Positions 3,214 to 5,468 of a stretch of 50,672 nucleotides of DNA are shown in pieces. The stretch comes from Macrostomum lignano (taxonomy: Eukaryota). The first letter of the stretch is position 1. Each line of letters begins with the position of its first letter. Position numbers and translations under genes: made by a program. The notes beneath the pieces are model-generated. The model was given only the letters and a program-made list of their open reading frames with translations, made no database searches and was not told where the DNA came from. Location: positions 1-50,672 of the forward strand of contig NIVC01004319.1 of assembly GCA_002269645.1 (NCBI GenBank). Direction: 5' to 3'.

Positions 3214-5468
3214 GTGCCTTCGCATAAATCCGAAAGGCCTGGACGAGGAGAGCAAGGACTACTTGTCCCTCTACCTGCTGTTGGTGAATTGCGGCAGCAG
3301 GAATGAAGTTCGCGCAAAATTCAAATTCTCTTTGCTAAATGCTAAACGCGAGGAGACAAAAGCTATGGGTTCGTATGGTTTGCTATTTGCATCCTACGCT
3401 ACTGATACGCAGTCTTAGTAGCATAGTTGGCATTTTTCATTGTTTCTCTTCTCCCTCTATAATATGGCAGAGAGCCAGCGCGCCTACAGGTTCGTCCAAG
3501 GCAAGGACTGGGGCTTCAAGAAGTTCATTCGGCGAGACTTCCTCGTGGACGAAGCCAACGGGCTGCTGCCTGATGACCGGTTGACCATCCATTGTGAGGT
3601 AAGGAATATTGTTGGGACTACATTTTCTGACAATGTCATCATCAAACTTGTCAGACAGTTTGTAAGACATTGATAGAGCCAAAAAATGGTCAAAATAGAT
3701 CAATATTAAAATGATCAGACATTGTCAGGACTATCATCGCAATGGTCAGACATTGTCAGGACCAACCATCGCAATGGTCAGACATTGTCAGGACTATCAT
3801 CGCAATGTCAGACATTGTCACATTGTCAGGACCACCATCGCAATAGTCAGACATTGTCAGGACCAACCATCGCAATGGTCAGACATTGTCAGGACCAACC
3901 ATCGCAATGTCAGACATTGTCACATTGTCAGGACCAATCATTGCAATGTCAGACATTGTCAGGACCAATCATTGCAATGGTTAGACATTGTCAGGACCAA
4001 TCATCACAATGTCAGACATTGTCAGGACCATCGTCGCCTTCTCGCAGGTGTCTGTAGTCGGCGAGACGGAGAACCTGGCTGGCCAGTCCAGCGCCCAGTC
4101 TGTCCGGCTGCCGGAGTGCCGCCTGGCGGACGATCTCGGCCAGCTGTTGGAGCGCGGCCAGCACGCGGATCTGACGCTGTGCATCGGCGGGGCGGAGCTT
4201 CCGGCGCACAAAGCGGTGCTGTCGGCCCGGTCACCAGTGTTCCAGGCAATGTTCCAGCACCAGATGGAGGAGAGCCGCGCCAGCCGGGTTGTTGTTGAAG
4301 ATGTCGACGAGGACACGATGCGGGAGGTGCTGCGCTACGTGTACAGCGGCCGAGCGCCGCGGCTGGACCAGATGGCCGACAGCTTGCTGCCTGCGGCTGA
4401 CAAATACCAGCTGGACCGGCTCAAGGTGACTGACTCTGCTTGCTTCTCCGGGGCTCTGTCTGATTCTCTACCCTTCAGCTCCCCAGCCACCCTGTTGCTT
4501 CTCTTATCTACATGTGCAGCTGTGCTTCTGTTTGAAGAGGTCAGACTGAAGAGCCAATCAGAAGCCAGCAAGGGAGAGAGATAAGAATAACGAGACTGAA
4601 CTAGACAGAGGGAGAGAAAACAGAGTAAACAGAAACGAGGGGTGGGTGAAGTGCGCGGACTGAGGAAAGAGGTCAGATTGAAGAGCCAATCAGAAGGCAG
4701 CAAGGGGGAGAGAGATAAGAATAACGAGACTGAACTAGACAGAGGGAGAGAAAACAGAGTAAACAGAAACGAGGGGTGGGTGAAGTGCGCGGACTGAGGA
4801 AAAAGGTCAGATTGAAGAGCCAATCAGAAGACAGAAAGGAGACAGGAGAGAGAGATAAGAATAAAAATGTTGAACTGGTCACAGAGGGAGATAAAACAGA
4901 GTAAACAGAGACGATGGCAGATGAACTGAATAGATGACTAAGAAAGCCGCGAGAATGTCATTTTCTCTCCCTCTGTCCAGACATGGCCATAGACATCCGC
5001 TGGGAGTGCAACTCCCTCTTCACCTCCCCGCTTCTCACTTGCTCTCCCTTATTACTTTGTCAACTACCTCCTTCCATCTGTCGTATTCCTCCCTTTTCTT
5101 TCCTTCTCTATTCCCGTGTCTCTTATCCCTCTGTCTCTTTTTTTCCTCACTCATTTTATACTAGCAACCCCCCATCGGCCCCTTCCCCATCAGGTGATGT
5201 GCGAAGAGTCCCTAGCCGCCGCCCTGACAGTTGAAAACGTCTGCGACTGTCTGGTGCTGGCCGACCTGCACTGCGCCGCTCAGCTGCGCCAACGGGCCAG
5301 CCAGTTCATTCTGGCCAACGCCTCCCGGGTCGCCGAGTCCCCGGCTGGGACCAGATGGTCCGCCGACAGCCGCACCTGGTTGCCGAAGCCTTCAAAGCCC
5401 TGGCCGCTCAGGCCGCGCCGCCCATGGGGCCGACACCTAAAAAGCGAATGAAGCTGCCGGCTAGTTGA
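3214..5468 (+). CDS. SPOP: Speckle-type POZ protein (SPOP/roadkill; MATH-BTB-BACK Cullin3 adaptor), 5'-incomplete. Exons 3214-3368, 3471-3598, 4048-4425, 5194-5468
   Basis: The spliced translation (W)[68 protein letters not shown]../[35 protein letters not shown] closely matches the known SPOP MATH and BTB sequence. All introns are GT-AG with consistent phases. One C appears to be missing in the run at 5339-5342; restoring it gives [41 protein letters not shown], the conserved SPOP C-terminus with its NLS. I did not find the N-terminal exon(s) in 1-3213. Confidence 0.96.
3712..4030. repeat. ~32-bp intronic minisatellite (GTCAGGACCAACCATCGCAATGGTCAGACATT)n
   Basis: Tandem units running to within ~20 nt of the acceptor at 4047. 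Confidence 0.92.
4534..5013 (+). other. Diverged copy of P2X intron 4 3' end, splice acceptor and first ~35 nt of P2X exon 5, inside a SPOP intron
   Basis: The segment aligns by eye with 38465-38809. It has ~135-bp units (AAGAGGTCAGA.TGAAGAGCCAATCAG...), then TAGATGACTAAG..GTCATTTTCTCTCCCTCT.TCCAG, then CATGGCCATAGACATCC.CTGGGAGTGCAACT, which reads [10 protein letters not shown] versus P2X MVAIDIHWECN. Confidence 0.9.

Follow-up and report, generated by a model that had tools for sequence, protein, structure and literature searches.

A fragment of a P2X receptor gene, spanning an intron end and an exon start, within the last intron of a SPOP-like gene of Macrostomum lignano

How does the end of one gene's intron, together with its splice acceptor and the beginning of the following coding exon, come to lie inside an intron of another gene? 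The question is raised by a stretch of the genome of the flatworm Macrostomum lignano (contig NIVC01004319.1, 50,672 nucleotides, the whole of which we call the window). An earlier note on this DNA had described a piece of a P2X receptor gene, made up of the end of an intron, its splice acceptor and the first part of a coding exon, embedded in an intron of a SPOP gene 34 kb away. The setting is repetitive. The Mlig_3_7 assembly of M. lignano (GCA_002269645.1), of which the window is one entire contig, spans 764 Mb, of which over half is repetitive and 15% consists of simple and tandem repeats; non-repetitive blocks with at least 95% identity account for 180 Mb (PMC5730564). Within the window, tandem repeats make up 49% of all bases, rising to 65% across the span of the P2X gene. 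Here we delimit the fragment, identify its donor, estimate its age and weigh the routes by which it may have arrived.

The fragment and its two host genes

The recipient is the 3' part of a SPOP-like gene on the forward strand (3214–5468; exons 3214–3368, 3471–3598, 4048–4425 and 5194–5468), the 5' exons of which lie off the contig. It has MATH, BTB and BACK_BPM_SPOP domains (Pfam PF22486, PF00651 and PF24570), and its modelled part is 100% identical to an M. lignano protein named 'Speckle-type POZ protein'. The last intron, placed at 4426–5193 (+) by tblastn against SPOP and by its GT..AG boundaries, is a phase 0 intron that separates ..LDRLK from VMCEE... Also on the forward strand is a P2X receptor gene (27565–39223), which we modelled as six exons (27565–27772, 34777–34957, 35024–35189, 37876–38116, 38774–38894 and 38989–39223), with one or more further C-terminal exons downstream. 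This gene matches the Pfam family P2X_receptor (PF00864) with an E value of 9e-128 across profile positions 1–360 of 361; the best matches of its modelled protein are M. lignano ATP receptors, and over the aligned residues the protein is 100% identical to UniRef entry A0A1I8G2Z9, also from M. lignano.

A blastn search delimited a P2X-derived block of 479 bp in the last SPOP intron (4535–5013, +), the counterpart of which in P2X runs from 38468 to 38809 (+). The local alignment joins 4644–5013 to 38446–38809 on the same strand (+/+); it spans 381 columns at 83.5% identity and has an E value of 2e-92, in agreement with the fragment that the earlier note had described. In an alternative repeat register, 4535–4773 aligns with 38468–38714 at 85.4% identity. 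Apart from the edge of a tandem array, a self-comparison of the window gave no second pair of dispersed repeats with a separation of over 1.5 kb.

The block is made of a short tandem array followed by a splice acceptor and a stub of exon. Tandem Repeats Finder (TRF) reports a unit of 134 bp repeated 2.8 times at 4535–4914, and the count previously given, three units in SPOP against two in P2X, proved right for the complete units, which we name S1 to S3 and PA and PB, respectively. S1 (4535–4666, +) and S2 (4667–4800, +) are of one type, A: S1 is 97.7% identical to S2 and 91.7% identical to PA, and S2, the counterpart of PA, is 92.4% identical to it and 79.1% identical to PB. S3 with its tail (4801–4959, +) is of a second type, B, and is the counterpart of PB, to which it is 84.7% identical (80.0% to PA). 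Within either locus, A and B units share about 81–84% identity. On the P2X side, PA occupies 38468–38605 and PB with its tail 38606–38750; the array there (38425–38750) is headed by an additional partial unit of 43 nt (38425–38467, +), of which SPOP has no copy.

Downstream of the units, the SPOP intron contains a copied polypyrimidine tract and CAG acceptor (4960–4980, +; aligned to 38751–38773), that is, an orphan 3' splice site, and then a copy of the beginning of P2X exon 5 (4981–5013, +; 33 nt, aligned to the 36 nt at 38774–38809). The donor exon itself (GMVAIDIHWECNFDYDEEHC...; 38774–38894, +) follows a phase 1 intron, has AG and GT boundaries and an open frame, and was left whole, intact and in frame. 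The copy differs from it by the 3-nt deletion that had been noticed before (GTG, a Val codon) and by two transitions, one at the first exon base (G>A) and one that turns CAC into CGC (His>Arg).

The abrupt end of the similarity within the exon, another of the earlier observations, holds for both borders of the block. Beyond them, alignments between the flanks of the two loci do not outscore dinucleotide shuffles (z 0.5, 0.2 and -0.8). Composition breaks sharply at the same two points: the block is 77% purine, and the SPOP intron on either side is 18–30% purine (70% and 82% pyrimidine). One candidate for a further copy, the CT-rich segment at 5014–5193 read as an inverted and diverged unit, gives colinear-looking matches, yet scores the same as dinucleotide shuffles (z -0.02) and was rejected.

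A 16-nt core of the unit is confined in the window to the five units described above, and no further copy of the unit was found in about 200 kb of M. lignano DNA outside the window (the sequences that we number L001–L007; some 250 kb in all of the 764-Mb assembly). A 96-amino-acid minus-strand open reading frame that runs through the array has no relative among 1.84 billion protein representatives, a comparison in which repeats would be seldom represented because they are seldom annotated as proteins. A metagenome scan gave zero matches to the unit core, an uninformative result given that the collection does not include the M. lignano genome. At gathering score, nothing in the window matched Rfam, and 4300–5300 gave only a chance-level hit to NEAT1_2 (E 0.74).

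Three assembled copies of the locus

The junctions could in principle have been made by the assembler, as the earlier note had allowed. The same SPOP–DPH5 locus is present on two other contigs, L004 (NIVC01001398.1, 211 kb) and L005 (NIVC01002223.1, 22.9 kb), which are 98.2–98.7% identical to the window. Because the differences are many, mismatches as well as indels, we take the contigs to be separate copies of the locus. The last SPOP intron of L005 is 100% identical to that of the window, and that of L004 equals it minus exactly one 134-bp unit of type A, plus one SNP, which leaves a two-unit block of 345 bp. Both junctions of the block have thus been assembled three times, in two structural alleles. 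Given the same junctions on the window, L004 and L005, an assembly chimera is ruled out.

The locus is named here for the two genes by which it was recognized; DPH5, which encodes diphthine synthase, lies at 12806–16682 of the window, and the contig's annotated proteins include PAA47831.1 (DPH5) and PAA47829.1 (SPOP). An intron of DPH5 holds part of a retroelement that encodes an RNase H domain (open reading frame 14793–16196) and is absent from L004; in contrast to the P2X block, this fragment has ACCCAGGGAC on both flanks.

P2X as donor and SPOP as recipient

The earlier note had named one further scenario that would refute its reading, in which the unit and the exon stub together form a repeat that P2X merely exonised. 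However, three other P2X loci of M. lignano (L001, L006 and L007) share the beginning of exon 5 (GCATGGTGGCCATAGACAT.CACTGGGA.TGCAA) and the position of the intron before it; there the exon opens as GGMVAIDIHWECNFD, or as GGVVSITVNWDCNLD in L007. The 134-bp units are absent from all three, and their intron ends are unrelated to that of the P2X gene in the window. Exonisation of a repeat by P2X was therefore rejected. The encoded motif, GG[MV]..I.I.W.C, is also kept in P2X proteins of tapeworms, schistosomes, a nemertean, a hemichordate, a marsupial and a sea anemone. Because the exon start is present in P2X loci that have no units and its motif is conserved across animals, the exon piece is ancestral sequence of P2X. 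Together with the Pfam assignments of the two genes, this supports the reading, already made in the earlier note, of P2X as donor and SPOP as recipient.

Which P2X gene served as donor can be asked of the exon piece and the units. At the three synonymous sites that separate the P2X gene of the window from L001, in the codons ATC, GAG and AAC, the SPOP copy sides with the former. Neither the loss of Val nor the change of His to Arg occurs in any M. lignano P2X paralogue. With this codon agreement, the unit-by-unit orthology of the arrays and the unrelated intron ends of the paralogues, a paralogous donor was rejected; the donor is the adjacent P2X gene of the same contig.

The pairing of the units also indicates what was transferred. 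Given that S1 and S2 match PA at about 92% and S3 matches PB at about 85%, the block of A unit, B unit, tail, acceptor and exon start was copied whole. The A–B array thus predates the copying, and the transferred piece measured about 342–345 bp, which is the length of the two-unit allele on L004. The S1/S2 pair stems from a later duplication of the A unit within SPOP, variable between the contig copies.

The same evidence bears on ectopic gene conversion, in which both introns would already have held a 134-bp minisatellite and a conversion tract would have run out of it into the P2X flank. The block does have one border at or inside the array, with unique sequence at its other border, and these introns are full of minisatellites. 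On the other side, no older, more diverged units lie beside the SPOP block; for each of its units there is a counterpart at the matching place in P2X, the unit core occurs nowhere else in the roughly 250 kb of DNA examined, and the composition break marks the whole array as foreign to the SPOP intron. We consider gene conversion very unlikely.

Age of the insertion

Over 298 aligned intron positions, which also contain 8 indels, the Kimura two-parameter (K2P) divergence between the SPOP and P2X copies is 0.117; over the exon piece it is 0.065, a value based on small numbers. The three contig copies differ from one another by about 1.3–1.8% overall and by 1 SNP within the last SPOP intron. As the divergence of the block is several-fold above that between the contig copies, the insertion is an old event, several-fold older than the separation of the assembled copies of the locus. 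The earlier note had offered two readings of the moderate divergence, an old event or a paralogous donor; the first is borne out by these values, and the second fails on the codons and the orthology of the units. That the exon piece is about half as diverged as the intron part is what would be expected if the P2X side were under selection and the SPOP copy alone were drifting.

Marks of mobility at the junctions

The block begins AAGAGG and ends GCAACT, between flanks that read ..TTTG on the left and CCCT.. on the right. No A-run or poly(A) is found at either junction. No target-site duplication (TSD) abuts the junctions, the sole shared 6-mer, GCTTCT, lying 5 nt and 16 nt away from them. Terminal inverted repeats (TIRs) were not found; such inverted matches as there are lie inside the block or reflect base composition, and none sits at a border. 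These results uphold what had been reported of the junctions from reading the sequence, and they matter for the mechanism: with the intron retained and no A-run, TIR or abutting TSD, capture at the DNA level is favoured over classical retroposition. The host intron cannot be aligned with that of the only diverged SPOP paralogue (L002/L003), which thus shows no pre-insertion site. Microhomology at the junctions, the signature of templated repair, would be legible against such an empty site.

A mobile element could carry such a piece at the DNA level. The units would then be a Helitron-like or other non-autonomous element resident in P2X intron 4, which took the 3' P2X flank along with it, and it speaks for this idea that the start of the piece coincides exactly with a unit boundary and its end lies in unique flank, as in 3' read-through transduction. 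However, the block shows neither a 5'-TC/CTRR-3' terminus nor an A|T target; it has no hairpin or inverted repeat at its ends, no poly(A) and no TSD next to it, and neither the roughly 250 kb of M. lignano DNA examined nor predicted proteomes yielded an extra copy. The retroelement in the DPH5 intron, by contrast, has ACCCAGGGAC at its two sides. Capture by an element is distinctly unlikely on these grounds, and of the routes suggested in the earlier note under DNA-level capture, the Helitron-type one thus lacks a supporting hallmark, whereas the general proposal stands on the retained intron and the missing marks of a retrocopy.

An RNA template deserves separate mention. A fragment of unspliced P2X pre-mRNA could have been reverse-transcribed at a break in SPOP, or could have served directly as the template of its repair; a nascent transcript contains intron and exon in the sense orientation, and elements bearing reverse transcriptase lie nearby (the RNase H open reading frame at 14793–16196). 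The block has neither a poly(A) tail nor a TSD, and both of its ends are internal to the transcript. RNA and DNA templates would leave indistinguishable products here, and we judge an RNA route to be quite improbable.

A possible decoy splice site or a probable relic

The fragment brought a complete 3' splice site into SPOP. If the copied acceptor were spliced to the preceding SPOP exon in phase 0, the message would continue ACA TGG CCA TAG, three codons (TWP) and a stop, and its use would truncate SPOP before the BACK domain and the C-terminus. All 5 annotated M. lignano SPOP proteins have the K|VMCEE splice instead and skip the copied acceptor, which is used by no annotated isoform among these five.

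Might SPOP nonetheless make use of the block, whether as a decoy or poison 3' splice site, as an acceptor for spliced-leader (SL) trans-splicing or as an intronic enhancer built on the core of the units? Several features are suggestive. This 27-nt core, which contains AGGTCA and a CCAAT box, is 93–100% conserved between A and B units, compared with about 64% in the rest of the unit, a contrast that was drawn post hoc. The acceptor and its polypyrimidine tract are intact; a helix of 13–16 bp, in which a purine run pairs with the acceptor, is predicted in both the P2X and the SPOP copy; and the block is kept on all three contigs. On the other hand, the three contigs split too recently for this retention to count, a codon is missing from the exon piece, splicing at the acceptor is seen in none of the annotated SPOP isoforms, and the divergence is consistent with neutral decay, with no Rfam family matched. 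A functional module in SPOP is accordingly extremely unlikely. The conservation of the core does count against pure junk, hinting at constraint or conversion. A more speculative version of the idea would have a portable cis-module, in which the helix sequesters the tract and the AG, regulating splicing or transcription of P2X exon 5 and later being recruited by SPOP, there to act as a decoy, a poison 3' splice site or an SL acceptor; its alternative form is an undescribed, capture-competent Macrostomum element. We hold this pair of ideas to be very improbable. On balance, the SPOP copy is probably now evolving neutrally, as a decaying relic.

A templated insertion as the likely origin

We think it likely, without regarding it as settled, that the block arose by a single, old, duplicative insertion at the DNA level, which placed a copy of about 345 bp of P2X into the last SPOP intron. 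The mechanism that we infer is either break repair or a template switch during replication. A break or template switch would have occurred within the last intron of SPOP, which is rich in pyrimidines and lies 34 kb upstream of the donor on the same strand, and an ectopic template in cis would have been copied there, most likely through synthesis-dependent strand annealing (SDSA), microhomology-mediated break-induced replication (MMBIR) or alternative end joining (alt-EJ) of the kind that yields a 'templated insertion'. The copy would have taken in two 134-bp units, already diverged from each other, and all that follows them from the tail through the polypyrimidine tract and the AG acceptor up to nucleotide 36 of exon 5, and the P2X donor would have come through the copying unaltered. 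Afterwards, the SPOP copy would have lost one codon and gained substitutions and indels, and its A-type unit would have been doubled in some chromosome copies. In Drosophila gap repair, ectopic templates in cis are favoured. It counts against this reading that break repair from an ectopic template usually requires some homology at the target, of which none is visible here now.

The position of the copy would also follow from two steps: a tandem duplication of 34 kb (breakpoints 5013|5014 and 38809|38810, with the junction ..GAGTGCAACT|CCCTCTTC..), then a deletion that left a stub of 345 bp. A deletion running from 4535 to P2X intron 4 of the first copy would remove nearly all of the extra copy. 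This sequence of events accounts for the direct orientation of the copy, its position in cis and its placement upstream of the donor; the right junction is shaped exactly like the breakpoint of a tandem duplication; and this genome tends towards duplication and tandem repetition. Against this, two independent events must both happen to spare the two genes, and the window contains no further remnant of a second copy. We consider the two-step origin unlikely and prefer the single templated insertion.

Discussion

Taken together, these results make the SPOP block a clean, natural and triply assembled example of an intron–exon junction that moved between neighbouring flatworm genes at the DNA level. 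It illustrates how an essential gene can acquire an orphan splice acceptor within an intron through a small ectopic duplication. The block is also a datable marker that arose before the three assembled copies of the locus separated, and it offers a modest internal calibration, in that the exon piece, where constraint acts on P2X alone, is the less diverged part by about half. It reveals no new mechanism and no new function; it adds one more case to a known class of events, small ectopic DNA duplications that leave an orphan acceptor and an exon stub.

Several known systems place a piece of one gene inside another. Processed retrocopies and non-LTR 3' transductions share this likeness, but a processed retrocopy has its introns removed and carries poly(A) and a TSD, whereas the SPOP block keeps about 310 bp of intron and has neither mark; moreover, both of its ends are internal to the P2X transcript. 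Helitrons and Pack-MULE or Pack-TYPE elements capture intron-containing gene fragments and move them into other genes at the DNA level. Helitrons, however, are recognized by 5'-TC...CTRR-3' ends, a sub-terminal hairpin and an A|T target, none of which the block has, and Pack-MULEs and other TIR transposons by TIRs and a TSD of fixed length, both of which it lacks; nor did the roughly 250 kb of M. lignano DNA examined show any sign of multiple block copies. A small segmental or tandem duplication with a later deletion resembles the SPOP case in orientation, in cis position and in the right junction, and differs in that a 345-bp stub is all that is seen here, with no intermediate observed. The comparison that we favour is with templated insertions, or filler DNA, which arise when double-strand breaks are repaired inaccurately or replication switches templates (SDSA, MMBIR/FoSTeS, alt-EJ). 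Inaccurate repair of breaks is known to produce insertions of 10–1000 bp from ectopic donors (PMC7407515), and the SPOP block falls within this size range, at a few hundred base pairs, with a donor in cis tens of kilobases away that is identifiable and intact, and with no TSD, TIR or poly(A). It differs from fresh repair scars in its age (K2P about 0.12) and in its cargo, a full splice acceptor with the start of a coding exon.

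A shared core in the 134-bp units

We found that all five 134-bp units, three in the last intron of SPOP and two in P2X, have in common a core, AGGTCAGATTGAAGAGCCAATCAGAAG, which occupies the first 27 nt of each unit (4538–4564, 4670–4696 and 4804–4830 in SPOP; 38471–38497 and 38609–38635 in P2X). Within this core are a half-site, AGGTCA, and a CCAAT box that resembles the consensus. The A- and B-type units are 93–100% identical across the core, compared with around 64% across the remainder of the unit, a contrast with Fisher P values of 0.004 to <0.0001 for a region that was picked post hoc from the alignment. 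Separately, a 32-bp minisatellite (3710–4037, preceding SPOP intron) contains GGTCAGACATTGTCAGGACCAATCA, which bears a loose likeness to the unit core (GGTCAGA..TTG..AG..CCAATCA); this likeness may be due to chance.

A predicted helix at the acceptor

RNA folding predicts that, in both copies, a purine run of the last unit can pair with the acceptor's polypyrimidine tract and its AG (38674–38773 in P2X and 4875–4980 in SPOP). The predicted helix comprises 13–16 bp and closes a loop of 60–64 nt, and the folding z-scores of the acceptor-helix regions are −2.5 in P2X and −2.3 in SPOP. Inspection by eye revealed one helix position that is changed on both sides, being C–G in SPOP and G·U in P2X. 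Because only two sequences are compared (n = 2), this two-sided change is not evidence of selection.

Variation among copies of the locus

Tandem repeats, with periods of 2 to 310 bp, make up 49% of the contig (1–50672); within the span of the P2X gene their share is 65%. Nearly every intron in the window is filled by at least one minisatellite array, and the copy number of these arrays differs among the three contigs that carry the locus (the window, L004 and L005).

In the older ML2-assembly model of P2X (UniRef A0A1I8G2Z9), the exon 1 peptide (MSSVRKF...KLK) is tandemly doubled, whereas exon 1 in the window (27565–27772) is single; the doubling probably arose as an artefact of ML2, either in the gene model or in the assembly. 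In the last exon of SPOP, a homopolymer is C4 in the window (5341–5344) versus C5 in L005, which shifts the SPOP reading frame in the window. The frame-shifted C terminus is present in PAA47829.1, the NCBI SPOP protein of this contig, whereas the SPOP proteins from L004 and L005 are intact. The C4 run reflects either an error in the long-read consensus or a true inactivating indel in one redundant copy.

Between SPOP and P2X lies DPH5, which encodes diphthine methyl ester synthase (12806–16682; exons 12806–12926, 13617–14049 and 16313–16682) and is 100% identical to PAA68414.1. Its intron 2 holds, inside a 17-bp minisatellite, a retroelement fragment (14693–16178) with a minus-strand open reading frame (14793–16196) and an RNase H domain (PF00075, E = 6e-10), bordered on either side by ACCCAGGGAC. 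The fragment is absent from DPH5 on L004, and the gene on L005 is also around 1.5 kb shorter than in the window. The fragment looks like an insertion private to the window's copy of the locus.
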